NCBI RefSeq assembly: GCF_000143415.4
Contig: NW_003314402.1
Span: 73,804-137,803, forward strand
Length of the DNA stretch: 64,000 nucleotides
Reading direction: 5' to 3'
Origin: Selaginella moellendorffii
Taxonomy: Eukaryota > Plantae > Lycopodiophyta
Shown here: positions 2,959-64,000 of the stretch, piece by piece
How positions within the stretch are numbered: position 1 is the first letter of the stretch
How the letters are laid out: every line of letters begins with the position of its first letter
The notes under the pieces: generated by a model
The model's database searches: none
What the model saw: the letters and a program-made list of their open reading frames with translations, nothing else
What the model was told of the DNA's origin: nothing
Made by a program: the position numbers and the translations under genes

Positions 2959-3135
2959 GAACTGGAGTCCTTCGCATTTTTTTTAACTTATATCAGTGTA
3001 CATAGTTAAAGAGGGGAATATGCTTCTAGCATCGGCGCGTATATTCTTCGGATAGTTCAATGAATGAATGTGTCATGGGCTATGGGTATAGGAGCTTTGG
3101 CTAGGGTACAAGCACTTCTAGGTTTCTTCGCGGCT

Positions 3136-5150: not shown

Positions 5151-5876
5151 TCTACTACTACTGTCCCTCTATCCATAAGTGTTTTCGTTTTCATTTTATA
5201 TGTTTTTTTTTAATTTCTTTTTATTTTTACTCTCTCCTTTCGATCGTTGGCCTTGGATTTTTTCCCTTCTCAAATTTTTTTTTTATTTTTGCTACGAAAT
5301 AAATTTTCTTCTTCGATCTTGTATCTTACTACTAGTAGTGCGCAAATTCTTGTGTTTGTGTATTATTAAATTTTCTTCGTTTCTAATGGATTGCTAGTTG
5401 ACGAGAATTGTGTCACAACATGCCTAGTTTTTCTCGATTCCGCAAGTCTGGGTTGAAAATAAGCAAAGGCTGTGATTGACACTAATCACAAGAGTTTCCA
5501 ATCCTTGGCAGCGATGCAACTTCGAAGCTGTGCAACCCTTTGATTGTCTTATCCAGCTGCCAACTTCATTGTCCAAAAGTATGGGGAATGTGTGGATGGC
5601 TTCCACAAACCAAACCAATCAGGATCGAGAGAGATCATATTCTTAATATTCCTATGTTTTCTATATTTTACCATTTAGGTTTTAAAATACTTAAAACCAC
5701 GAGAGTAAAGTAATATCCCGAGAATACAATTTGTAAGAAAAAAAGAAACTGTTTCTTCTTGACGCTGTGAAATCTCTGTTTTCGTTTTATGATGTCCTAC
5801 TTGTGATGCAAAATAGTGTAGCATTTGCGCAGATCTTCAAGAACCCAATCGATGTCCACTGAAGGAGCAAGGTTTA

Positions 5877-8800
5877 CTAGAGCCCGTATATCTTGAGATC
5901 CGGCCGCTCCTCAAGCCATGGTGGAACTTTCGTACCTTTTGGGCAGTATACGACTTTGAGCCTGGGAAATAAGCCAAGGCCGTGATTGTCTGAACTCAAT
6001 TGGGGCCACACTACATCATCATGATCAGAGAGCACAAGTTCCTCCAATCCTGGAAGGGATGCAATGGATGATGGAATATTTTCGATCCTAACCAAGGTTA
6101 CACCTCTTAGAGCAGTCATCTGGTCTGTTGGCTCAAAGAAATCATTGGGGAGCTGCCTCATACAGCCCTTCAGCAAAGATAATGTGAACCATTTCACCTT
6201 CAGCTGTGATCTCTCGGTTGGCATCAAGAGTCTCCTCATGTAACTTTTTATAACAACATCCAGTGTATCAAGGTCTTTGGGGAGTTGTGTCACAAAGAGA
6301 GGCAAATGCTCCCATGTATTATCAAGAGCCACAACGAATGTTAAACTCTTCAGATTTGGAAGACTTGCTGCCAAATCATCCTTGAACTCCGACTGTGCAA
6401 TGTGCAGATTTCGAAGCTCCAGACGTTCGAGGCATGGGAACGATCCTTCCAGACTGAAGAACTGGATACCACTGCAGTCTAGGTGAAGTTCTCGTAGCCA
6501 TTGAAAGCCCTTTAACGAAGACAGGTCTTTCATTGTCTCATTGTTTGTGATGGTTAAAAATTGTAGCTGTGGCCATTCATGGCTTTCGGCATTGTTTTCA
6601 CCGTCTTGTACCCCATCAATGGTAAAGTGCTGAAGTTGTTTGGAATTCTTAAACATTCGCTTCCAGTCAAGTTTGATAGTCGATTTCACGCAAATGTGAC
6701 ATCGTCTTAGGTTGACAAGTTGCCACAGGCCGGTGAAATCGCCAAAGTCCATGCTCTTTGCACGCAACACCAGTGTCTCAATGTCCACTAGTGCACCAAG
6801 GCTGTGAGGTATTTTTATTGTTGCATTGAGATGTAGCTCTAAATGTCTTAGCTTGTGTAGCCTTGAAATTGCACTCAGATCCACAGCTAACTCCTTACAG
6901 GATTCAAGCTCCAGTGTTTTTATTGTTGCATTGTAGAGTTTTAGCTCTAAATGTCTTAGCTTGTGTAGGCTTGAAATTCCACTCAAATCCAGAGCCAGAG
7001 CTAACTTCTTATAGGATTCAAGCTCCAGACGTTCAAGGCATGGGAACGATCCTTCCAGACTGAAGAACTGGATACCACTGCAGTCTAGGTGAAGTTCTCG
7101 TAGCCATTGAAAACCCTTTAACGAAGACAGGTCTTTCATTGTCTCATTGCTCCTGATGGTTAAAAATTGTAGCTGTGGCCATTCAAGGCTTTCGGCATTG
7201 TTTTCACCGTCTTGTACCCCGTCAATCGAAAAGTCCTGAAGCTGTTTGGAATTCTTAAACATTCGCTTCCAGTCAAGTTTGATAGTCGATTGCACACTAA
7301 TGTTACATCGTCTTAGATTGACAAGTTGCCACGGGCCGGTGAAATCGGCTAAGTCCATACTCTTTGCACGCAACACCAGTGTCTCAATGTCCACTAGTGC
7401 ACCAAGGCTGTGAGGTATTTTTATAGGTGTTGCACCATAGAGGTCTAGCTTTAAATGTCTTAGCTTGTGTAGGCTTGAAATTCCACTCAAATCCACAGCT
7501 AACTCCTCAGAGGAATGAAGCTCCAGCTCTTCCAAGTTGAATAATTGGGGCAGTAATCCAAAGTTGAGTTTTCTGATATGATTGCAATTCAAAACCTTCA
7601 GTGATGTCAAGCTGAAGAGCGCATCTGGCAATTGAGGCACACCTGAATATCGAAGGTCAAGCACTTGAAGGTTTCTCAGCTTGGATATGCTCTCTAGAAT
7701 AAAACGGACCTGATCATAACATCTATTCAAGCTCAATACCTTGACATTTTCGAAGTGATCTATAATAAGACTGTCATCCACACCAGAAATTACTTTACAT
7801 CCATCGAGAAGCAAGACATCTCGCACATGAATGTCAGACAAAAAGCTGCTTGTAACCTTCTTTCCAATGAATGAAACTTTAGAACATGTTGGAGAAATCC
7901 CAGGTGGACAATCATAGCCAAACAGGCATCCCTTCTCGTGCTCTTCCTGGGGTGGGTACTTCCCTTTCAAGATTCTTATGCACAGCTTGCGTACCATATC
8001 GTGCACAGTTACATGCTTATACCATTGAATCTGATCCGCGACTCTGAATCGAGAATCAGTTGTCTTCACTAGGCATCTTCGTTCCAGTTCACTAACAATC
8101 TGCAGAGGCGAGAGTTCTGACCCAACCGCTATCCAACATTTTCTCAGATCATCAAACTCGATTCGCCGATCTTCTGGAAACGCAGCCATATAGAGAAAGC
8201 ACTCTTGCAGCTTTTCATCCTTATTAGACAGCTCGTCATAGCTAAACTTCAAGCGCTGGAACATCTGCTTCTCAACGTCTGGGTCATTCAACAAATGCAT
8301 CTTCTGATAGCGTTCTTCCCACACCTGCGGCCCGTCATGCCTGTACTCAGCCATGGCACTGCCAATCACTTCAAGAGCTAAAGGGAGCCCCTCACATTTG
8401 CTAGCTATTCTCTCGGCAACTTTCACAATGTCCGGATCACTAGGTAGTGAATCATAAAAGGCAAACTTCCAAAACATCATTTTGCTCTCGTCCTCTGATA
8501 GCTCATGCACAGGAAGTGCCTTTGCACCCAGCATGCTCAAAATGCCTTTCTTTCTGGTTGTTACCAGCACCCGGCTGTAAGAGGACGGCCCTGCTATAAA
8601 ATCCAGTCCCTTGGCCTGGCTCATTTCCCACACATCATCCAGTATCAGCAAGACACAAATTCCACGAGCAACATTTTGTGCCAAGTGCTGCACATGCTCA
8701 AGGGTGCCTGCATTTTGGGCCCTCTCTTTCATGCCGCCCCATTCAAGAGCGTCGAGGAGCAGGGCCCTGAGATCATCCTCCGATGCATCTCTCTTGACAG

Positions 8801-9852
8801 TGATCCATACAATGTTGTCATGGAAATGCTGCCGGACCCTCTGGTCATTGTGCACGAAGCTTGCAAGGGTGGTCTTGCCACACCCTCCCATTCCCAGGAG
8901 TCCAAACCATTTCCCCGGGGCTTGTGGATCCAGGAGGGCATTCACCACCTCATCCAGCTGCTCCCCATGGCGGCCAAACATGTCGTTGGCCTCGGGAACA
9001 CCACGCCGTACATAGTTTACGAGACCTCTGTCTTGTGGACAACTCCGTACGGAAAAGCTGGTGCTCGGCCGTATCACTCTCAACTCTTCTCGCTCGTACC
9101 TTTCAATGTGCGGGAGGAGATCGTTCTCGCAAGTGCGTACCAGCTCCGAAATCGCGCCAGATCGCTTCTCCCTGCGCGAAAGATCCATCTTTTAGCTCCA
9201 TTGCTTCAAACATGAATTCGAATAAGCCTTACTGTGATCCAAGCAGCGCTTGCGCCTTCTTAGTCCATTCAGTCAGTCCAGTCAGCCACGCCTCAGCCTC
9301 ACCAGAGTAGCGGAAATCTGGATTCCTGTGCTTGGGAGCATTAAACTTGTCAAGCGTGGCCTGGATTCTGGATGCCCTCTTCTTTAGCTCCTCAATGTGG
9401 ACATTCAGCTCATGCTCGTGACCTTGGATCTGCGACAGGAGATCGTCGTAGGCACTTAAGGACTTCGCGATGTCGTTACTCCGCTTGTACCTATAGGAAG
9501 TGGAGAAGTTCAACCAGCTGCCTGCCATTTCTACACACACACACACACAAAAGATAAAATGCTACTGTACCCACCGCTTTATGGGGCTCCAGATCCTGTT
9601 GTGGCGTGATCCCAAGAGTGCTTGTGCCGTGGTGTTCCATTTCCTGACACGCTCCAAGCATTCCTCGGCCGCTTGAGAGAACGTGAAGCCAGGATTCTGC
9701 TGCTTGTGATCACTGAAAGCGTTGATCTTGTGCCGGATGTGGGGCGCCTTGTTCTCCAGCGTTTCAATGTTGGCATTGCAGTCCCATATCTTCTTAGCAG
9801 GGCGCAGAGCCAAGCCACACAAGGCGCTTGCCAAGGAGCCCACAACCTCCAT
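5877..9852 (-). CDS. NLR copy 1: tandem CC-CC-NB-ARC-LRR, about 1276 aa; exons 9852-9575, 9490-9233, 9171-5877
   Basis: ORF 5877-9188 has P-loop GMGGCGKTT, kinase-2 LLILDDVW, RNBS-B SRVLVTTR, CEGLPLAL, RNBS-D CFLYMAAFPED, VHD (MHD variant) and LRRs. GT-AG phase-2 introns 9574-9491 (84 nt) and 9232-9172 (61 nt) join the upstream ORFs in frame from ATG 9852 (MEVVGSL...). Confidence 0.9.
9533..9549. repeat. (AC/GT)n microsatellite in NLR intron 1; also 17788-17814 and 57211-57229
   Basis: Directly visible; length differs between copies. Confidence 0.9.
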
Positions 9853-9944
9853 GCCTGTAGACCTACAAGTCAAGGTCGTTTCCCTCTTGCAATGCCAGCT
9901 GTGGCTCTCTATCTCTCTCTCTCTCTCATACACAAAATAGCTGG

Positions 9945-10403
9945 GAGGCCTTGACAGATTTTCGATGGCCTGCACAAACCAAACCAGTTCTCGTGGAACA
10001 TCTTGCTGCGAACGTATGTTGCAAATCGTAGGATGCCCCCGATTCCATGGGAACAGGTTTATGGATGAGGAAAAGAAGCTGTTTGATTCGATCGCTTCTC
10101 GTGAAATATTATGATCAAGGGGCTCGACTTCGCAAAGAGGAAAGATGCTATCTCTTCTGGCAGCACCTGCTCGAATAAGGCATTTGGAAGAAGCAAAAAC
10201 TCTCCTTTTAATGCGATGCCTCGGAGGAAAAACGTGCTTGCAAGAAACACAATGATTGTCAACCATACGCTCTCAAAGAGCCTATTTGACCAGAGCCATA
10301 CAGGAATCTTGTGTCTTGGGCAGGCATGCTACAACGCATCTTTAAATGAAGGTGGAAGTTGCAACTTCGATGATGCCGAACTAAAACTCTCTCTCATAAC
10401 TCT

Positions 10404-14755: not shown

Positions 14756-17700
14756 CTAGGGCCCATATATCTTGAGATCTGGCCGCTCCTCAAGCCATGG
14801 TGGAACTTTCGTATCTTTTTGGCAGCGTAGGACTTTGAGCCTAGGAAATAAGCCAAGGCCGTGATTGTCTGAACTCAATTGTGGCCACACTACATCATGA
14901 CGACCAAGGAGCTCAAGTTCCTCCAATCCTGGAAGGGATGAAATGGATGATGGAATATTTTCGATCCTACCCAAGGTTACACCTCTTAGAGCAGTCATCT
15001 GGTCTGTTGGCTCAAAGAAATCATTGGGGAGCTGCTTACTAATAGCCTCCCTTGCAAATAATTCGACCTGTTTCACCTTCAGCTGTGATCTCTCAGTTGG
15101 CATCAAGAGTCTCCTCATGTAACCTGCTATACAAACTTGCAGATCATCAAGGTCTTTGGGGAGTTGTGTCACAAAGAGAGGCAAATGCTCCCATGTATTA
15201 TCAGGAGCCAGATAGAATGTTAAACTCTTCAGGTTTGGAAGACTTGCTGCCAAATCATCCTTGAACTCCAACTGTGCAATGTGTAGATTTCGAAGCTCCA
15301 GACGTTCGAGGCATGGGAACGATCCATCCAGACTGAAGAACTGGATACCACTGCAGTCTATGTGAAGTTCTCGTAGCCGTTGAAAGCCCTTTAGCCAAGA
15401 CAGGTCTTTCATTGTCTCATTGTTTGTGATCCTTAAATATTGTAGCTGTAGCCATTCGAGGCTTTCGGCATTGTTTTCACCGTCTTGTACCCCATCAATC
15501 GAAAAGTGCTGAAGCTGTTTGGAATTCTTAAACATTCGCTTCCAGTCAAGTTTGATAGTCAATGCCACCCTAATGTCACATCGTCTTAGATTGACAAGTT
15601 GCCACGGGCCGGTGAAATCGCCAAAGTCCATGCTCTTTGCCCGCAACTCCAGTGTCTCAATGTCCTCTAGTGCACCAAGGCTGTGAGGTGTTTTTATTGT
15701 TGCCTTGTGGAGGCCTAGCTCTAAATGTCTTAGCTTGTGTAGGCTTGAAATTCCACTCAAATCCACAGCTAACTCCTCATAGGAATCAAGCTCCAGCTCT
15801 TCCAAGTTAAATAATTGGAGTAGTAATGCAAAGTTGAATTTCTTGATGTCATTGCATTTCAAAACCTTCAGTGATGTCAAGCTGAAGAGCGCATCTGGCA
15901 ATTGAGGCACACCTGAATATCGAAGGTCAAGCACTTGAAGGTTTCTCAGCTTGGATATGCTCTCTGTAATAAAACGGACCAAATTAGAGCATCTATTCAA
16001 GCTCAATACCTTGACATTTTGGATGTGATCTATACTAAGACTGACATCCACACCAGAAATTCCATAACATCCATCGAGAAGCAAGACATCTCGCACATGA
16101 ATGTCAGACAAAAGGCTGCTTGTAACCTTCTTTCCAATGAATGAAACTTTAGAAAATGTTGGAGAAATCCCAGGTGGACAATCATAGCCAAACAGGCATC
16201 CCTTCTCGTGCTCTTCCTGGGGTGGGTACTTCCCTTTCAAGATTCTTATGCACAGCTTGCGTACCATATCGTGCACAGTTACGGTTCTTCTCAGGGCCCA
16301 CCATCGAGAATCAGTTGTCTTCACTAGGCATCTTCGTTCCAGTTCACTAACAATCTGCAGAGGCGAGAGTTCTGACCCAACCGCTATCCAACATTTTCTC
16401 AGATTAGCAAACTGGATTCGCTTATCTTCTGGAAACGCAGCCACATAGAGAAAGCACTCTTGCAGCTTTTCATCCTTATTAAAGCGTCCCAGCTCGTCAT
16501 AGCTAAACTTCAAGCGCTGGAACATCCGCTTCTCAATGTCCCCATCATTCAACAAATGCATCTTCTGATAGCGTTCTTTCCACACCTGTGGCCCCTCATT
16601 CCTGTAGACAGCCATGGCACTGCCAATCACTTCAAGAGCTAAAGGGAGCCCCTCACATTTGCTAGCTATTCTCTCGGCAACTTTCACAATGTCCGGATCA
16701 CTAGGTAGCGAATCATAAAAGGCAAACTTCCAAAACATCTTTTTGCTCTCGTCCTCTGATAGCTCATGCACAGGAAATGCCTTTGCACCCAGCATGCTCA
16801 AAATGCCTTCCTTTCTGGTTGTTACCAGCACCCGGCTGTAAGAGGACGGCCCTGCTATAAAATCCAGTCCTTTTGCCCAGCTCGTGTTCCACATATCATC
16901 CAGTATCAACAAGACATGGTTGCCACGAGCAACATTTTGTGCCATCTGTTGCACATGCTCAATGGTGCCTGCATTTTGGGCCCTCTCCTTCATGTCGCCC
17001 CATTCAAGAGCGTTGAGGAGCTGGGCCCTGAGATCATCCTCCGATGCATCTTTCTTGACAGTAATCCACACAATGTTGTCATGGAAATGCTGCCGGACCC
17101 TCTCGTCATTGTGCACCCAGCTTGCAAGGGTGGTCTTGCCACACCCTCCCATTCCCAGGAGTCCAAACCATTTCCCCGGGGCTTGTGGATCCAGGAGGGC
17201 ATTCACCACCTCATCCAGCTGCTCCCCATGGCGGCCAAACATGTCGTTGGGAACACCACGCCGTACATACTTTACGAGACCTCTGTCTTGTGGACAACTC
17301 CGTACGGAAAAGCTGGTGCTCGGCTGTATCACTTTCAACTCTTCTCGCTCGTAACTTTCAATGTGCGGGAGGAGATCGCCCTCGCAAGTGCGTACCAGCT
17401 CCGAAATCGCGCCAGATCGCTTCTCCCTGCGCGAAAGATCCATCTTTTAGCTCCATTGCTTCAAACATGAATTCGAATAAGCCTTACTGTGATCCAAGCA
17501 GCGCTTGCGCCTTCTCAGTCCATTCAGTCAGTTCAGTCAGCCACGCCTCAGCCTCACCAGAGTAGCGGAAATCTGGATTCCTGTGCTTGGGAGCATTAAA
17601 CTTGTCAAGCGTGGCCTGGATTCTGGATGACCTCTTCTTTAGCTCCTCAATGTGGACATTCAGCTCATGCTCGTGACCCTGGATCTGCGACAGGAGATCG

Positions 17701-17787
17701 CCGTAGGCACTTAAGGACTTCGCGATCTCGTTACTCCGCTTGTACCTATAGGAAGTGGAGAAGTTCAACCAGCTGCCTGCCATTTCT

Positions 17788-17818
<31 letters not shown>

Positions 17819-18120
17819 ATAAAATGCTACTGTACCGACCGCTTTATGGGGCTCCAGATCCTGTTATGGCGTGATCCCAAGAGTGCTTGTGCCTTGGTGT
17901 TCCATTCCCTGACACGCTCCAAGCATTCCTCGGCCGCTTCAGAGAACATAAAGCCAGGTCCATTTCGCTCCTTGTGGCGACCGAAAGCGTTGATCTTGTC
18001 CCGGATGTGGGGCGCCTTGTTCTCCAGCGTTTCAATGTTGGCATTGCAGTCCCATATCTTCTTAGCAGGGCCCAGAGCCAAGCCACACAAGGCGCTTGCC
18101 AAGGAGCCCACAACCTCCAT
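14756..18120 (-). CDS. NLR copy 2: CC-CC-NB-ARC-LRR, about 1069 aa, single LRR block; exons 18120-17840, 17745-17488, 17426-14756
   Basis: Same motifs and splice sites as copy 1; ORFs 17827-18120, 17484-17813 and 14756-17443 join in frame. Confidence 0.9.
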
Positions 18121-33177: not shown

Positions 33178-34376
33178 TTCTACTCTCAGTTCATCAAGGT
33201 CTTTGGGGAGTTGTGTCACAAAGAGAGGCAAATGCTCCCATGTATTATCAGGAGCCAGATAGAATCTTAACCTCTTCAGGTTTGGAAGACTTGCTGCCAA
33301 ATCGTCCTTGAACTCGGACTGTGCAATGTGTAGATTTTGAAGGCCCAGAACTTCAAGGCATGGGAACGATCCATCCAGACTAAAGAACTGGATGCCACTG
33401 CAGTCTATGTGAAGTTCTCGTAGCCGTTGAAAGCCCTTTAGCCAAGACAGGTCTTTCATTGTCTCATTGTTTGTGATCTTTAAAAATTGTAGCTGTGGCC
33501 ATTCAAGGCTTTCGGCATACCGTCCTGAAGCTGTTTGGACTTCTTAAACATTCGCTTCCAGTCAAGTTTGATAGTCGATTCCACCCTAATGTCACATCGT
33601 CTTAGATTGACAAGTTGCCACAGGCCGGTGAAATCGCCAAAGTCCATGCTCTTTGCCTCCAACTCCAGTGTCTCAATGTCCACTAGTGCACCAAGGCTGC
33701 GAGGTATTTTTATTGTTGCACGATAGAGGTCTAGCGTTAAATGTCTTAGCTTGTGTAGGCTTGAAATTCCACTCAAATCCACAGCTAACTCCTTATCGAA
33801 ATGAAGCTCCAGCTCTTCCAAGTTGAATAATTGGGGCAGTAATGCAAAGTTGAATTTTGTGATGTCATTGCATTTCAAAACCTTCAGTGATGTCAAGCTG
33901 AAGAGCGCATCTGGGAATATTGTCACACTTGAACGTCGAAAGAGGGGCACATCTGAACATTGAAGGTCAAGCACTTGAAGGTTTCTCAGCTTGGATATGC
34001 TCTCTGGAATAAAACGTACCAAATTATAGCATCTATTCAAGCTCAATACCTTGACATTTTGGATGTGATCTATAATAAGACTGACATCCACACCAGAAAT
34101 TCCATGACATCCATCGAGAAGCAAGACATCTCGCACATGAATGTCAGACAAAAGGCTGCTTGTAACCTTCTTTCCAATGAATGAAACTTTAGAAAATGTT
34201 GGAGAAATCCCAGGTGGACAATCATAGCCAAACAGGCATCCCTTCTCGTGCTCTTCCTGGGGTAGGTACTTCCCTTTCAAGATTCTTATGCACAGCTTGC
34301 GTACCATATCGTGTACAGTTACATAACATCGATAATCAGTTGTCTTCACTAGGTATCTTCGTTCCAGTTCACTAAC
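33177..34376 (-). pseudogene. NLR copy 3: remnant (end of ARC plus LRR), truncated at both ends, frameshifted near 33480-33520
   Basis: ORFs 33480-34529 and 33118-33459 contain IVSELERR..VTVHDMVRK and LRRs. The 5' side is fused to transposon sequence and the 3' side to a RAD5 fragment. Confidence 0.85.
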
Positions 34377-37300
34377 TATGGCCCTAGCATGTATAACCAC
34401 AATTTTTAATTCTTCCTCCTCCAAGACATTTTCTTCAACCAAATTATCATTAAGTAAACTATCCATCACTACCTCCAACATCACTTGTGACAAATATAAT
34501 GTTCTTCCATAAATCATATCCAAACCCATTTACTGGATTATATAGTTTTTACTTTCCCTCTAAATCCACTCTATTATTTTCTATTGTGCTAACTTGTGCA
34601 TTTTTAGTGAGAATAAGTGTTTACCTATGGTTATAGAAAGTAGATTTGGTGAAAAAATAACCTTTTGGTGCTTTTGTTGCAACACATAATAGACAACAAT
34701 AATTTTTCTTTCTTTTTTGCTTTGGTTTGGTATAAACTATTGAGATGTGCCATCTTTTGGCTAACCTAGTGAACATTACAAGGCAAACACACTTTTGCAA
34801 AACTTGTGAAATTTAAAAATACACAATTATCACATATCTTTTAGTGTTTTTAATGTTGTCATCCTTGTAGTTTTTTGCTGCTTTCTTTCAAAAATATAAT
34901 ATTGTTACAAATATTTTTTTTGAGGTATTTTTTAAGTCCTTATTTAGCAAATTCATGATGGAGGTAAAGAAGATAAATTGCCCAATCCGTGATGCTTTTT
35001 GGGATTGAGCTCATAGGTAACGTTTGATAAATATAAAACATAGTAAGGTTAAGGCTTTGTACTTATTTTTATTGATATAAGTTTCTTTATTTTGGTATCA
35101 TGCTTACTTTAACAAATTTTTTTGACTCTTTGAGTTAAGTAAGGATCATTTGCTCTTCTCTAATGCTATAAAGGTTTTAGTAAAGATCCAGCTCATATCC
35201 TTGTACATCCAATGTGCCAACTATGTTTTTAAGTGATTTTTATTTGGTTTTGGAAATCTTTTATCTACAATTCACATATACACTACTATATGTGTTGCTA
35301 GAGCTTACCATTGCATCCACAATAACATTAACATGTCTTTAATTGATCTTGACATGATGCAAACTAAATGACTATATTCAAGAATGCCCTGTGATCTGCA
35401 AACCCACTATAGTGCTATTTTGCTTGCAAAGCAATTAAAACTAGTAAAGTGATGTTTTTAATTATACATTTTTTAAAATATTTATGTATTTAGATTATTA
35501 GGATATAAGTTGTGGCTTGATTTTAGAAGAAACTCCATACCCCAGAAGTAATTTAAGAAGAAAAATAGTCCAATAATGCAATTATGGAGATAGAAAGTCT
35601 CTCTAGAGAGACCACAATATTAGATATGGTAACAAATAAATTTGATTTTAGAGAAAGTGAAGCAGAAGTTTTTAGTGCACATAGTTATAATAGCATAATT
35701 AATTAAAATCAATATAGGTTTGTTAATCAATTTATATACATTTGAACTTCCCACATATGAGCTAAGATTTGCATAGTAGAGTTTAGTGGGTGGCAAGATT
35801 GTAGAGATGCTAAGTTTTGTATCTTTCCATTGTTGTAGTTAAATCAACGAGTTGAGATAAGGTAAGCAATGGGTAAAAATACATAAAGTGAATCCTTTTT
35901 TTTTCTTTAAATGTTTATGACCCTAGCAAGATTGAATAAACCATCTAGCAAGGGATTGTGTAAATATATTGAGAGTGTTTATTTAGCTAGAGTGTTGCCA
36001 AACTTCATTAACAAGATTAAGAGTGATGGATTTTTTAGAGAGGACCATTTCAAACTCAACATTTTGATATGGATGAGCATTGGAGCAAAAATGGGGGATG
36101 CAATCCAAATGACAAAGACACTCAAGAATCTCAATGATTCATCGGAGTAGGCATGCCCAAAATAAGAGCCCTTTACGAAGACAATAATGCGAGCTAACAC
36201 CCACTCAAAAACAAAACACACCAAGTCAAGGATTATAATAGTGGCAACCAAGGTTTGCAACACCAATTTTCAATGTTAAAAAATACTCCAAGCGCTTACT
36301 AAATTTCCCATTAGCTTTATTTGGCAAGAATTTACTTTATGAGTTATTATAAATCTTTCCTAACTACAAAAAAGGATACTTCAAATGTGAAAGGCAAGTG
36401 GAGCAAAGAATTAAGCTCAATCAAAAGAGGATACTTCAAATGTAAAAGGAAAGTGGAGCAAAGAACTAAGTTAATTAAGTCAGTTCATGAGTGCAAATTG
36501 GATAACCATGCCTTTTGTGTTTGTGAGTTCAAGATAAAAAAGATCTTCATTATATTGCGGTATCAACTTAAAAAAGCAATGGTTGTTAAAATAGAGCAAA
36601 TAAAAGTGTTTATAAAATACTTATATGACTAAAGTGTTATAGATCTCCTTGCATTTAAATCAAATATGAGGTTGGTATTGATAGATCTTGAGTTTTTTAA
36701 GGTACAAACCATATTAGTTTCAATGGAAAAAACCTCATAGTTTTAAATATGGCTTTTGCAATATCTTCAAATAGTAAGGATAAAATTTTTAAATAAATGG
36801 CAATGAGAAAATTACAATAGTTAAGAAAGTTTATAGTGGCACACTCATTTAAAAGTATAAATCCCTACGAGTGAGGATAATTTCACTTATAGATAAGGAT
36901 TTATTGGCCAATATAAAGATTTTTTTTGCATGTGAGGTAAATCTTTTTTAGGATGACATTTTAAAATTATGCTCAACACTAAAGAAAGAAGTATGCACTA
37001 ATTTTAAATTTTAAGTTCAGAAGATGTTTTGGCCTAAGTGCATAAAGGCCATTGTCATTGGTAAGGATAATGAAAAAACTATTAAAGAGGTATTCTTTTA
37101 AAAATGATTTTATAGTTTTTAATTTTTGTTTGTGCAGCTCCAGACTAAATCATATGGCAACGGATGTGAGGAGCAACCCCTATACCCTACTAAACAAGAT
37201 TGATGAAGACATAGAGTGTGAGATTATAACTAAAGAAAAAAAATGTAAATTTCATAGTATAACTTAATTTTATATATTGTCTAATATTTTTTGGCTCTAT

Positions 37301-46145: not shown

Positions 46146-47635
46146 CTAGTAAACCTTCGAAGATTCAAGCCATGGTGGAACTTTCGTAACTATATCATCC
46201 CTGAAGTTTATCTGGAGATCCGGCCGCTCCTCAAGCCATGGTGGAACTTTCGTACCTTTTCGGCAGCGTAGGACTTTGAGCCTTGGAAATAAGCCAAGGC
46301 CGTGATTGTCTGAACTCAATTGGGGCCACACTACATCATCATGATCATAGAGCCCAAGCATCTCCAATCCTGGAAGGGATGCAATGGATGATGGAATATT
46401 TTCGATCCCCATCAAGTGCGCCCATCTTAAAAGAGTCATCTGGTCTGTTGGCTCAAAGAAATCATTGGGGAGCTGCCTCATACAGCCCTTCCGCAAAGAT
46501 AATGTGAACCGTTTCACCTTCAGCTGTGATCTCTCGGTTGGCATCAAGAGTCTCCTCATGTAACCTTCTACTCTCAGTCCATCAAGGTCTTTGGGGAGTT
46601 GTGTCACAAAGAGAGGCAAATGCTCCCATGTATTATCAAGAGCCACAACGAATGTTAACCTCTTCAGATTTGGAAGACTTGCTGCCAAATCATCCTTGAA
46701 CTCCGACTGTGCAATGCGCAGATTTCGAAGCTCCAGATGTTCGAGGCATGGGAACAATCCATCCAGACTGAAGAACTGGATACCACTGCAGTCTAGGTCA
46801 AGTTTTCGTAGCCGTTGAAAGCCCTTTAACCAAGACAGGTCTTTCATTGTCTCATTGTTTGTGATGGATAAAAATTGTAGCTGCAGCCATTCGAGGCTTT
46901 CGGCATTGTTTTCACCGTCTTGTACCCCATAAATGGTAAAGTTCTGAAGCTGTTTGGAATTCTTAAACATTCGTTTCCAGTCAAGTTTGATAGTCGATTC
47001 CACCCTAATGTGACATTGTCTTAGATTGACAAGTTGCCACAGGCCGGTGAAATCGGCAAAGTCCATGCTCTTTGCCTGCAACTCCAGTGTCTCAATGTCC
47101 TCTAGTGCACCAAGGCTGTGAGGTATTTTTATTGTTGCATTATTGAAGAGGTTTAGCTTTAAATGTCTTAGCTTGTGTAGGCTTGAAATTCCACTCAAAT
47201 CCACAGCTAACTCCTTACCGGAATGAAGCTCCAGCTCTTCCAAGTTGAATAATTGGGGCAGTAATGCAAAGTTGAATTTTGTGATCTCATCGCATTTCAA
47301 AACCTTCAGTGATGTCAAGCTGAAGAGCGCATCTGGCAATTGAGGCACATCATCGAAGGATCGAACGTCAAGCACTTGAAGGTTTCTCAGCTTGGATATG
47401 CTCTCTGGAATAGAACGGATAGAGCTTCCATTGAAGCTCAATACCTTGACATTTTGGATGTGATCTATAATAAGACTGACATCCGCACCAGAAATTCCAT
47501 GACATCTATCGAGAAGCAAGACATCTCGCACATGAATGTCGGACAAAAGGCTGCTTGTAACCTTCTTTCCAATGAATGAAACTTTAGAAAATGTTGGAGA
47601 AATCCCAGGTGGACAATCATAGCCAAACAGGCATC
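46146..47635 (-). pseudogene. NLR copy 4: LRR-only remnant with open frame (466 aa ORF) and a duplicated KVPPWLE tail
   Basis: Homologous to the LRR region of intact copies. Homology stops at about 47635, where a URT1 fragment begins; no NB-ARC. Confidence 0.8.
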
Positions 47636-47637
47636 CA

Positions 47638-47990
47638 TCTTAGTCGAATGCTAACAGCAATGGAGGATAAAACAGGCCGACTCAAAGGCAGCATTTCCAG
47701 CGGAGAAAAAACCGGACTACAAGGTTGCAAAGGCACGGTCTTTGGCATCTCAACTTGAACGTCTAGGCTTGCCATCGGGAAGTATGCAAAACTCTTCCGT
47801 TGGCGCGGCTTTTGAGGAGTCCAAACAAAGGCTCCATAATCTAGATGCTTTGGAAGGAGAAGGCGTGACGACCTCTCTAGATCTCGAGGAGCTACAAATT
47901 GACGGTCACCGTCGTGAGGGTAAAGCTCCACAGTTTTACTATTTTCATGTGTTTGTATCTCTGGTTACAGCCGAAGGAGAACCGTTTCAG
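47638..47990 (+). pseudogene. Short URT1-like internal fragment between two NLR remnants
   Basis: Matches 44281-44676. Confidence 0.75.
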
Positions 47991-48269
47991 GACCTCTGAA
48001 GAACTAAAGGTATGCATATGCATATTCTTAATATTGTTATGTTTTCCATGTTTTACCATTTACTCTATACACCAGATTTTAAAATACTCAAAACCACGAG
48101 AGTAAAGTAATATCCTGAGAATACGATTTGTAAGAAAAACAGAAACTGTGTCTTCTCCAAACGCTGCTGACGGCTTGGAAATCTCTGTTTTTGTTTTTTG
48201 AGTGATGCAAAATAGTGTAGCATTTGCGCAGATCGAGAACCCAATCGATGTCCACTGAAGGAGCAAGGT

Positions 48270-49381
48270 TTAAGCCCAGAAGATTATCTGGAGATCCGGC
48301 CGCTCCTCAAGCCATGGTGGAACTTTCGTACCTTTTGGGCAGTATACGACTTTGAGCCTGGGAAATAAGCCAAGGCCGTGATTGTCTGAACTCAATTGGC
48401 GCCACACTACATCATCATGATCAGAGAGCACAAGTGTTTCCAATCCTGGAAGGGATGCAACGGATGATGGAATATCTTCAATCCCAGACAAGTGCACCAA
48501 TCTTAAAAGAGTCATCTGGTCTGTTGGCTCAAAGAAATCATTGGGGAGCTGCCTCATACAGCCCTTCCGCAAAGATAATGTGAACCGTTCCACCTTTAGC
48601 TGTGATCTCTCGGTTGGCATCAAGAGTCTCGTCATGTAACCTTGTACATCCAGCAAATTAAGGTCATTGGGGAGTTGTGTCACAAAGAGAGGCAAATGCT
48701 CCCATGTATTATCAGGAGCCAGATTGAATGTTAAGGTCTTCAGGTTTGGAAGACTTGCTGCCAAATCATCCTTGAACTCCGACTGTGCAATGTGCAGATT
48801 TCGAAGCTCCAGCCATTCGAGGCATTGGAACGATCCATCCAGACTGAAGAACTGGATACCACTGAAGTCTAGGTGAAGTTCTCGTAGCCGTTGAAAGCCC
48901 TTTAACCAGGACAGGTCTTTCATTGTCTCATTGTTTCTGATCGTTAAAAATTGTAGCTGTGGCCATTCATGGCTTTCGGCATTGTTTTCACCATCTTGTA
49001 CCCCGTCAATTGAAAAGTGCTGAAGCTGTTTGGAATTCTTAAACATTCGCTTCCAGTCAAGTTTGATAGTCGATTCCACCCTAACGTCACATCGTCTTAG
49101 ATTGACAAGTAGCCATGGGTCGGTGAAATCGGCGAAGTCCATGCTCTTTGCCCGCAACTGCAGTGTCTCAATGTCCACTAGTGCACCAAGGCTGTGAGGT
49201 ATTTTTATTGTTGCATTGTGGAGGTCTAGCTCTAAATGTCTTAGCTTGTGTAGGCTAGCTAACTCCTCATTGTGAGGTATTTTTATTGTTGCATTGTAGA
49301 GACTTAGCTCTAAATGTCTTAGCTTGTGTAGGCTTGAAATTCCACTCAAATCCACATCCTCAGAGGAATGAAGCTCCAGCT
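48270..49381 (-). pseudogene. NLR copy 5: C-terminal LRR-only remnant with open frame (361 aa ORF)
   Basis: LRR homology; joined at about 49381 directly to RAD5 HIRAN sequence. Confidence 0.8.
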
Positions 49382-51244
49382 CGGATTCGTGTTGGCGAGT
49401 TCATTTCCTTCAGTTTTCCCAAGCCTGAAGCCGAAAGTAAGAAGAAGTTCTTTGAGCACAAGAAGGTTCGGCCAAAAGCGAGCTCCGACATTGTAAGGTT
49501 CTTGACAAAAGCTTCAGGAGAGGTACGTTTCACTTGACTTGTTTCTTCGTTTTAATTCTAACCATTTGCTCACAGAGAGGACGGCTTCCAGCCGACTGGG
49601 CCAAGTGTTTGATACCTTTGGGAAGTGCAAAATGGCACCAGAGGCTCTTTCTCTTATGAGCAGCATAGTTCTCCATTTGAGGTAGAGTTTTCTGTGTTTA
49701 CCAGAGACGTTATGTATATGATGTGCTTGCAGAGTTTATATCAACAAGTCAGAAGCCTTACGAGGAGGGGGATGAGCGCGGATTGAAGCTTCTGCAAGCT
49801 ATCTTGAAGCCGTTAATGCTTCGAAGAACAAAAGATTCAACTGATAGAGAAGGAAGGTAAGCATTTTTTTCTTTGCACCGTGCCTTGTCTTGTATTCACT
49901 CACAAGTTGGATTCACAGACCAATTCTTGTTCTCCAACCGGCTCAATGTGAGGTTATTGAATGCAAACTATCTGAGCCTGAACGTGATTTTTATGATGCC
50001 CTTTAGAACAGATCTAAGGCATGAAGAACTTCTCTTTCTTTTATTTTCTCTTTTTTCTGAACACGTTTTTGCGTTTGTGATCAGGTAAAATTCGATCAGT
50101 TCGTTGAACAAGGTAAAGTTCTCCATAACTATGCCTCGATCCTCGAACTGCTACTTCGATTACGGCAAGCTTGTGATCATCCTTTTCTTGTTCTGAGGTA
50201 GAAAATGCATCCTCTTATGTCTGAAGTTCCTGACGTTTTCTTCATCACGCAGCCGTGGCGATACTGAAGACTTTGCGGACCTAAGAATTCCTCCCAGGTG
50301 CCTTCGACGGCGTATGTCAAAGAGGTGGTGGATGATATTCATAAAGGAGAAAGTGCTGAGTGCCCAATTTGTTTGGAGATGCACGCAGTTCTTACACCAT
50401 GCGCTCATCGAATGTGCCGTGAGTGCCTATTTAATAGCTGGCGTACTAGCGCCGGAGGTCCCTGTCCAATATCCGAGGTAACATATTGTTTTTTTTCTCG
50501 AGCTCTTTTCCATATCCATAGCTATCATGCAGGCGTTCCTGTACGAAATAGGAACTCATAACTGTACCAACAAGTAATCGGTTTCGAATAAATGTCGAGG
50601 AGCAGTGGAAGGAGTCGTCCAAAGTCGAGGCTCTGCTGCACCACCTCCAAACGTTAAGTGAGGCCGGGTCGAAAAGCGTTGATTTTAATCAGTGGACAGC
50701 GTTTCTCGACTTGTTAGAGATACCATTGAAAAGGTACGAGCGTCTTTCCTTTTGGTGCTTTCTCTTTGTTTGTGTTTCTAACAATGCACCGCCAGGAAGA
50801 ACTTCTGTTTCGTCCGCTTGGACGGAACACTATCGCAGCGTCAGCGAGAACAAGTGCTCAAAAGCTTCAGCAATATTCCAGCCGTGGCCGTAAGCTTTTT
50901 GTGTTGCTTACCTCCAAGAAACCACTCTATTTTGTGGACAGGTCATGCTCTCATGCTTTTCTCATGGTACGCGCTATAGTTTTCTTTTTTAGCCATCTTC
51001 CGAGTCGAGAATGTGGACGATCGAGCATCGGTCAGACGAAGAACGTATCGATCAAGCGATTCATCGTCAAAGTAAGCGCCACTTGAAACTCTCTTTGACG
51101 TTTCTCATGTCTCTAGAGCAGGACTCGGTGGAGGAGAGAATGCAACAGGTCCAAGCGAGGAAGCAGCGATTGATCGCGAGGGCTCTCACAGACGAAGAGG
51201 TGCGAAGCGCTCGAATCGAGGAGCTCAAAATGCTATTTAGATGA
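49382..51244 (+). pseudogene. RAD5: RAD5-like pseudogene (5'-truncated) with RING and HELICc remnants
   Basis: CPICLEM..AVLTPCAHRMCRECLFNSWRTSAGGPCPI (ORF 50298-50561); C-terminus RIEELKMLFR. Confidence 0.87.
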
Positions 51245-62887: not shown

Positions 62888-64000
62888 TTAATCCCTGAAT
62901 TTTATCTGGAGATCCGGCCGCTCCTCAAGCCATGGTGGAACTTTCGTACCTTTTTGGCAGCGTAGGTCTTTGAGCCTGGGAAATAAGCCAAGGCCGTGAT
63001 TGTCTGAACTCAATTGGGACCACACTACATCATCATGATCAGAGAGCACAAGTTCCTCCAATCCGGGAAGGGATGCAATGGATGATGGAATATTTTCGAT
63101 CCTATTCAAGGTTACATCTCTTAGAGCAGTCATCTGGTCTGTTGGCTCAAAGAAATCATTGGGGAGCTGCCTCATACAGCCCTTCCGCAAAGATAATGCG
63201 AACCGTTTCACCTTCAGCTGTGATCTCTCGGTTGGCATCAAGAGTCTCCTCATGTAACCTTCTACTCTCAGTTCATCAAGGTCTTTGGGGAGTTGTGTCA
63301 CAAAGAGAGGCAAATGCTCCCATGTATTATCAGGAGCCAGATAGAATCTTAACCACTTCAGGTTTGGAAGACTTGCTGTGAACTCGGACTGTGCAATGTG
63401 TAGATTTTGAAGGCCCAGAACTTCAAGGCATGGGAACGATCCATCCAGACTGAAGAACTGGATACCACTGCAGTCTAGGTGAAGTACTTGTAGCCGTTGA
63501 AAGCCCTTTAGCCAAGACAGGTCTTTCATTGTCTCATTGTTTGTGATCCTTAAATATTGTAGCTGTAGCCATTCGAGGCTTTCGGCATTGTTTTCACCGT
63601 CTTGTACCCCGTCAATCGAAAAGAGCTGAAGCTGTTTGGAATTCTTAAACATTCGCTTCCAGTCAAGTTTGATAGTCGATTGCACGCTAATGTGACATCG
63701 TCTTAGATTGACAAGTTGCCACGGGCCGGTGAAATCGCCAAAGTCCATGCTCTTTGCACGCAACTCCAGTGTCTCAATGTCCACTAGTGCACCAAGGTTG
63801 TGAGGTATTTTTATTGTTGCACCTTTGAAGTCTAGCTTTAAATCTCTTAGCTTGTGTAGGCTTGAAATTCCACTCAAATCCATAGCCACAGCTAACTCCT
63901 TACAAGATTCAAGCTCCAGACGTTTGAGGCATGGGAACGATCCATCCAGACTGAAGAACTGGATACCACTGCAGTCTAGGTGAAGGTCTCGTAGCCGTTG
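62888..64000 (-). CDS. NLR copy 7: 3' (LRR) part, continues beyond the window end
   Basis: LRR homology runs to the window edge; it contains the same duplicated-block junction as copy 6. Confidence 0.8.
   Translation of the reverse strand, partial: QRLRDLHLDCSGIQFFSLDGSFPCLKRLELESCKELAVAMDLSGISSLHKLRDLKLDFKGATIKIPHNLGALVDIETLELRAKSMDFGDFTGPWQLVNLRRCHISVQSTIKLDWKRMFKNSKQLQLFSIDGVQDGENNAESLEWLQLQYLRITNNETMKDLSWLKGFQRLQVLHLDCSGIQFFSLDGSFPCLEVLGLQNLHIAQSEFTASLPNLKWLRFYLAPDNTWEHLPLFVTQLPKDLDELRVEGYMRRLLMPTERSQLKVKRFALSLRKGCMRQLPNDFFEPTDQMTALRDVTLNRIENIPSSIASLPGLEELVLSDHDDVVWSQLSSDNHGLGLFPRLKDLRCQKGTKVPPWLEERPDLQIKFRD

Follow-up and report, generated by a model that had tools for sequence, protein, structure and literature searches.

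The window considered here comprises 64,000 nucleotides of the lycophyte Selaginella moellendorffii and contains, on its minus strand, an NLR gene whose N-terminal domain is encoded by two short exons and the beginning of a third. Reading and translating the pieces of this gene reproduces exactly the peptides and junctions of the original prediction. Its features are as follows, in window coordinates, with the helices of the first repeat unit numbered a1 to a4 and those of the second a2' to a4'.

9575..9852, minus strand: exon 1, with the ATG at 9852; 278 nt, ending in phase 2, donor GT at 9574-9573
9491..9574, minus strand: intron 1; 84 nt, GT..AG, phase 2, with a (GT)n microsatellite inside it
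9233..9490, minus strand: exon 2; symmetric, 258 nt, phase 2-2, donor GT at 9232-9231
9172..9232, minus strand: intron 2; 61 nt, GT..AG, phase 2, in a codon homologous to that of intron 1 (from the transcript joint and the alignment)
5877..9171, minus strand: exon 3, encoding a4' and a linker, the NB-ARC domain (about 8235-8960) and LRRs (about 5880-7847), with the stop at 5877 (ORF list, Pfam)
9607..9783, minus strand: repeat copy 1 (a2-loop-a3), residues 24-82 counted from the ATG at 9852 (BLASTP and tblastn)
9235..9411, minus strand: repeat copy 2 (a2'-loop-a3') (BLASTP, tblastn and alignment)

Exon 1 encodes the hydrophobic N-terminal helix a1, followed by a2, a loop and a3 of repeat unit 1, while exon 2 encodes a4 of that unit and then directly a2' and a3' of unit 2. 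In Pfam searches, exon 3 contains a clear NB-ARC domain (E 4.3e-37; 128 bits, with the cutoff at 23.5) with the P-loop G-M-G-G-C-G-K-T-T, as well as LRRs (LRR_14, E 4.8e-30; LRR_4, E 3.1e-15), which identifies the gene as a plant NLR. The LRR region (5880-7850) carries a large recent internal tandem duplication, in which a block of about 230 residues occurs twice with high identity. Copy number and length of the LRR block vary between paralogues, the models of which range from 1058 to 1399 aa.

The architecture, which the original prediction had described as hidden, indeed escapes a bacterial-style ORF list, yet it is found in the public annotation: NCBI had already modelled it in P0001, P0002 and P0004. 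Of these, P0001 ("disease resistance protein RPS5-like isoform X2") matches the window gene with 100% identity and shares its two junctions; the exon 1 peptide corresponds to its residues 124-216. P0001 and its paralogues served as the queries in the sequence and fold searches reported below. P0001 begins 123 residues upstream of the ATG at 9852, whereas its paralogues P0002 and P0004 start at this position, with M-E-V-V-G-S-L. The upstream extension was considered as coding sequence and rejected. Since two paralogues start at the proposed ATG, and since the depth of RNA-derived contigs drops 10- to 100-fold upstream of about position 9940, it is probably a 5' UTR, with the start codon mis-annotated in the NCBI models. 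The extensions of different models (window 9853-10266; residues 1-123 in P0001 and 1-163 in P0013) are alike only in part. A further public model, P0016 (L002, 3001-16637), takes in two tandem copies of the family, whose N-terminal exons lie at 3001 and 13328, and an ion-channel gene overlaps it on the opposite strand; it is probably a merged model.

Expression and splicing of the gene, with both introns removed, are confirmed by RNA-derived contigs from four runs of four separate studies, aligned to positions 5700-10400. The presence of spliced forms in all four runs implies that they hold RNA. The joint 9171/9233, from which the 61-nt intron has been excised, was found in all of them (CT..AC on the plus strand, corresponding to GT..AG on the minus strand). 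The joint 9490/9575, marking the removal of the 84-nt intron, occurs in three (X1, X6 and X8); in the fourth, loose ends fit the spliced partner. Both junctions are present in a single contig of 479 nt (X8, record 28), which reaches from the end of exon 1 across the complete exon 2 and 166 nt into exon 3. The GT-AG splice model put forward in the original prediction agrees with these contigs as well as with the junctions of P0001. Contigs retaining intron 1 (9462-9602) are also present in three runs, at a depth of about 100-256; as they carry a paralogue-type base at 9572, they are not counted against splicing of the copy that starts at 9852. If retained in the frame of exon 1, the intron would lead to a stop after W-V-Q. 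Two NCBI isoform models (P0003 and P0011) start within intron 1 (M-A-G-S-W-L...), and the corresponding receptors would have no a1-a3. Contigs tend to break at two simple repeats, the (GT)n microsatellite in intron 1 (9525-9561) and a (GA)n stretch shortly before the start codon (9897-9940).

The peptides of exons 1 and 2 are homologous to each other, as had been proposed: BLASTP aligns them without gaps, with 23 of 59 positions identical (E 6e-13), and tblastn detects the same cross-match between units 1 and 2 in all three intact copies in the window. In an alignment of 16 rows comprising unit 1, unit 2 and the more distant paralogue P0019 (alignment A4), 19 columns are invariant. The same alignment bears out two further points of the original prediction, namely that each segment is followed by a phase-2 intron at a homologous codon and then by a homologous helix, and that the second repeat has no first helix, since unit 2 begins at a2'. 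The layout of the domain is thus a1-a2-a3-a4-a2'-a3'-a4', with seven helices, and three of the four helices of the basic unit are duplicated.

The origin of this layout can be traced with the help of P0019, which is encoded on another scaffold and has its P-loop at residue 180, whereas that of the duplicated form lies at about 272. Unit 1 is matched by residues 1-127 of P0019 with 46% identity, and unit 2 together with the linker by residues 32-179 with 43%; judged from these alignments, the protein has the unduplicated layout a1-a2-a3-a4. Its gene (L001) is interrupted by a single phase-2 intron of 63 nt, located in an Arg codon just before Y-E-R-Y, at the codon position and in the phase of both introns of the window gene. 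The single-unit layout and the single intron at the same codon therefore speak for one duplication of a genomic segment that included the intron. The ancestral four-helix unit had the structure a1-a2-a3, phase-2 intron, a4; a tandem duplication of the stretch that begins with a2, crosses the intron and reaches into a4 yielded three coding segments (a1-a2-a3, a4-a2'-a3' and a4'), that is, a new symmetric exon of 258 nt between two introns at homologous codons. The symmetry of exon 2 would arise automatically from a tandem duplication through an intron. At the level of sequence, these steps from a four-helix ancestor to the seven-helix domain are shown by the comparison with P0019.

In the NB-ARC tree, the Selaginella family forms one clade (support 100), in which P0019 is sister to the seven duplicated members tested, all of them united in one clade (support 98), implying that the duplication occurred once. 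Over 91 shared columns, units 1 and 2 are 43% identical, whereas P0019 shares 50% with unit 1 and 43% with unit 2. As the two units resemble each other no more than either resembles P0019, the timing of the duplication rests on the NB-ARC tree and on an assumed acceleration of change after duplication. Accordingly, both units, and unit 2 especially, appear to have diverged fast.

Two further intact copies are present in the window, so that exon 1 starts at 9852, 18120 and 57532 (tblastn).

17488..18120, minus strand: paralogue 2, with the same layout of exon 1 and a 258-nt exon 2; the gene continues to about 14762 and encodes protein P0004
56911..57532, minus strand: paralogue 3, with the same layout of exon 1 and a 258-nt exon 2; the gene continues to about 53684

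Exon 2 measures 258 nt and has conserved splice signals in each of the three intact copies (9490-9233, 17745-17488 and 57168-56911), in agreement with the original prediction. Truncated or rearranged copies at 33181-34379, 46209-49382 and 62903-64000 comprise only NB-ARC-distal and LRR parts and are probably pseudogenes or fragments inside the tandem cluster. The receptor gene belongs to a lineage-specific Selaginella moellendorffii family with a dozen or more gene models, and exon 2 is intact, in frame and free of stops in every duplicated paralogue seen, across two subclades that are 64-70% identical. Among the window copies, the dS of exon 2 is only 0.02-0.04, while protein identity in the LRR parts is about 81-84%; such low divergence next to divergent LRRs suggests gene conversion of the N-terminal exons or diversifying change in the LRRs. 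Each pair of these three copies shows only 3-5 non-synonymous differences in exon 2, too few for an informative dN/dS. Comparison of the window gene with the more distant copies in L002, part by part, gives values of about 0.6 for exon 1, about 0.7 for exon 2, 0.36-0.48 for a4' and the linker, 0.39 for the NB-ARC domain and 0.49 for the LRRs. The constraint on exon 2 is weak, though its frame is kept in all duplicated members.

Structural predictions were obtained with AF2 for residues 1-221, using 13 paralogous rows (pLDDT 75, pTM 0.51), and for a single unit (pLDDT 80, pTM 0.69). In the former, helices are predicted at residues 3-52, 60-84, 90-148, 156-177 and 183-212; a4 and a2' are thus modeled as one continuous helix of 59 residues (90-148). 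The predicted shape thus differs both from one non-repeated domain and from two four-helix CC domains: two three-helix bundles follow one another, and the only a1 stands at the tip. The extended helical stalk envisaged in the original prediction is compatible with this model, whereas its designation of the protein as carrying two complete CC domains ("CC-CC") is overstated: it is a2-a3-a4 that is duplicated, the bundles are predicted to share one continuous helix, and unit 2 has no a1. Due to the shallow alignment (13-16 paralogous rows) and the pTM of 0.51, the placement of the bundles and of a1 relative to each other is uncertain.

Searches with VIA-align match residues 17-207 to a spectrin-like fragment of EzrA (Z 10.1, 186 residues aligned), and residues 19-118 and 118-213 to separate three-helix bundles. 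Residues 3-117 match the CC of the ZAR1 resistosome (Z 9.8) and residues 23-118 the wheat G10 resistosome (Z 8.9, rmsd 2.2). For the single-unit model, the top VIA-align match is the ZAR1 resistosome (Z 9.7), and the top 25 Foldseek matches include six chains of CC-NLR resistosomes (NRC3, two of NRC4, Sr35, NRC2 and ZAR1), all at E > 0.3. Foldseek searches of the PDB with both models returned no match at E 0.001 or better, and a shape search of the ESM Atlas yielded nothing beyond elongated helical regions of a generic kind. Between helical bundles, fold scores of this size often arise by chance. All of the fold matches lie within this chance range (Z < 13, Foldseek E > 0.3), in which generic bundles score alike.

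By sequence, the domain falls below the threshold of every Pfam family, whether the individual exon peptides, the whole N-terminus or 16 single units are searched. The best score of the whole N-terminus against Rx_N (PF18052) is 17.7 bits, with a cutoff of 27.7, and only one of the 16 single units scores against this family at all (E 0.13). None of the Selaginella N-termini matches RPW8 (PF05659) at E values up to 1, while moss proteins do so at 3.6e-16 to 3.1e-8. An exhaustive HMMER profile search with the 221-residue N-terminus against 1.84 billion representatives, among them few other lycophytes, recovered S. moellendorffii paralogues and, apart from these, just two spurious matches; the latter (P0121 and P0122) were rejected as relatives, being inflated by repeats. 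At the sequence level, the domain is thus an orphan. A profile search of the PDB sequences with the N-terminus yielded nothing meaningful, BLASTP of P0019 against a moss N-terminus gave no alignment, and a3 shows no EDVID-like motif.

More sensitive comparisons give a direction. With hhalign, the single-unit profile aligns in register from a1 to a3 with the N-termini of bryophyte MAE-type proteins (probability 64-69%, E 4.5e-5 to 6.7e-5), and in register from a3 to a4 with the CCs of the angiosperm G10 type (probability 16%, E 0.0015, and 45%, E 2.2e-4). The language-model neighbours of the domain are mostly clusters of Rx_N (scores 0.90-0.94). Together, the weak evidence from folds, profiles and language models points to a strongly diverged helical domain of the CC type. 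As the matches to CC domains stay below strict thresholds and helical bundles attain such scores by chance, the domain is called CC-like here and not a proven member of Rx_N. The Selaginella NB-ARC domains group with bryophyte sequences (SH-aLRT 88, in a quick tree with biased sampling and poor rooting), and the G10-like sequences form a clade of their own (support 99) that excludes the Selaginella family. The resemblance to the RPS2-type CC noted in the original prediction is therefore retained in part: it is weakly reflected in the hhalign probabilities of 16-45% against G10-type CCs, but the NB-ARC domain lies outside the G10 clade.

Taken together, the gene probably encodes an expressed Selaginella NB-ARC-LRR receptor in which a diverged CC domain has been lengthened by one tandem duplication of a2-a3-a4, with a putative spacer or regulatory mechanism. 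In known CC resistosomes, the membrane funnel is formed by a1. The lengthened domain keeps a single N-terminal a1, and behind it the two bundles would be arranged on one continuous a4-a2' helix in a spectrin-like manner, as predicted by the model. The NB-ARC-proximal bundle (a2'-a3'-a4') keeps the ancestral a4-linker sequence and probably replaces the ordinary CC body against the NB-ARC domain. The distal bundle with a1 might be pushed outward by roughly one bundle length, so that upon activation or oligomerisation a longer stalk would carry a1. The added bundle could instead supply an autoinhibitory or interaction surface. That the duplicated helices act either as a rigid spectrin-like spacer, altering the geometry of the resistosome by placing a1 about one bundle length farther from the NB-ARC ring, or as a built-in autoinhibitory bundle, is a tentative and rather doubtful proposal; we know of no solved counterpart of the spacer architecture.

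The extra helices might have no specific role at all, representing a neutral, tolerated insertion in a receptor that acts as an ordinary single-CC NLR. The dN/dS of exon 2, the highest of all gene parts, is in line with this explanation, as are the tolerance of helical bundles for in-frame helix insertions and the youth of the family, which is restricted to one species within the searched data. However, neither subclade of the duplicated paralogues has lost the frame of the exon or acquired stops in it, core positions are invariant in both units, and the dN/dS of exon 2 does not reach 1 and resembles that of exon 1, the presumed functional part of the CC; a neutral insertion is considered unlikely. 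Skipping of exon 2, which its phase symmetry would permit in frame, would restore an ancestral-like single CC, and the exon could in principle be a regulated cassette by which the gene makes long and short receptors. Several NCBI isoforms exist for these genes and intron-1-retaining contigs occur, but no exon-2-skipping joint (9171/9575) is listed among the contigs of the four runs, which can drop rare variants, and both constitutive joints are present at high contig depth. The cassette is accordingly held to be very improbable.

A true CC-CC arrangement, with two autonomous CC domains of which one is the executioner and the other an integrated decoy, as suggested in the original prediction, or a sensor, could account for the homology of the two segments and of the helix that follows each of them, and a division of labour between two CCs exists in the liverwort Marchantia polymorpha, where only the internal CC of a CC-CC-NLR triggers cell death (PMC11218826). 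Its probability is nevertheless judged to be quite low: a4 and a2' are predicted to form one helix that ties the units into a single rod, and the domain has only seven helices, not eight. As unit 2 has no a1, it cannot be a complete four-helix CC. The preferred reading remains that of a single CC-like domain lengthened by an internal duplication.

Among known systems, the closest in layout are the tandem CC-CC-NLRs Mp3g09180 and Mp3g09210 predicted in Marchantia (Chia et al. 2024, Plant Cell; PMC11218826), for which NLRtracker reports a CblN module. Like the Selaginella gene, they encode NLRs of non-flowering plants with more than one CC-type helical module before the NB-ARC domain. For Mp3g09210, HR was obtained with the internal CC only, so that the two modules are not equivalent (PMC11218826). 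In Marchantia, the external and internal CCs are handled and assayed as separate domains, whereas in Selaginella three of the four helices of one domain, together with an intron, are duplicated internally, and the second unit has no a1; the two duplicated layouts are of independent origin. With a multi-CC layout thus on record, albeit as separate external and internal domains, the earlier suggestion of an undescribed NLR subclass does not hold in its strong sense: the Selaginella gene is a lineage-specific variant of CC-type NLRs and not a new receptor class.

The CCs of resistosomes (ZAR1, 6j5t; Sr35, 7xc2; NRC2, NRC3 and NRC4; wheat G10, 9h2l) resemble unit 1 in their position before the NB-ARC domain and in a hydrophobic a1 followed by three long helices. 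They are its best or near-best structural matches, at scores within the chance range of helical bundles, and the Selaginella domain differs from them in having three extra helices and no significant sequence match. Bryophyte CC-NLRs of the MAE type (P0022, P0024-P0026, P0028 and P0030), which score for both Pfam RPW8 and Rx_N, share with it the motif A-K-K-x-W-x-C after a1, but have a single unit, while the Selaginella domains stay below the Pfam thresholds of both families. EzrA (4uy3), which is built of spectrin-like repeats, resembles the predicted domain in its consecutive three-helix bundles, the last helix of one repeat continuing as the first of the next. This likeness is an analogy of shape only, between proteins of different biology and with no relation in sequence.

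The Selaginella N-terminus appears to be unannotated by standard tools. For S. moellendorffii v1.0, the supplementary NLRtracker summary (PMC11218826) gives, in the columns shown, 10 NBARC, 3 NBARC-LRR, 1 HET and 2 NBARC-ARM entries and two TIR-type entries. The absence of a CC-type class from these columns suggests that the per-class counts of lycophyte NLRs are underestimates.

The significance of the gene is bounded by the fact that its models are already public and that a multi-CC layout is already known from a liverwort; the spacer or regulatory function is one that we infer. The N-terminal domains of NLRs execute cell death, and to our knowledge almost all structural knowledge about them comes from flowering plants. 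If the extra helices do act as a spacer or an autoinhibitory bundle, the family would represent a lycophyte-specific executioner architecture and would indicate that CC executioner domains can be lengthened modularly. A CC-like domain has here been lengthened by an exact duplication of three helices, and an unduplicated sister gene persists in the same genome. The duplicated family and its surviving sister thus constitute a natural experiment on variation in the geometry that links the pore-forming helix to the NB-ARC ring.
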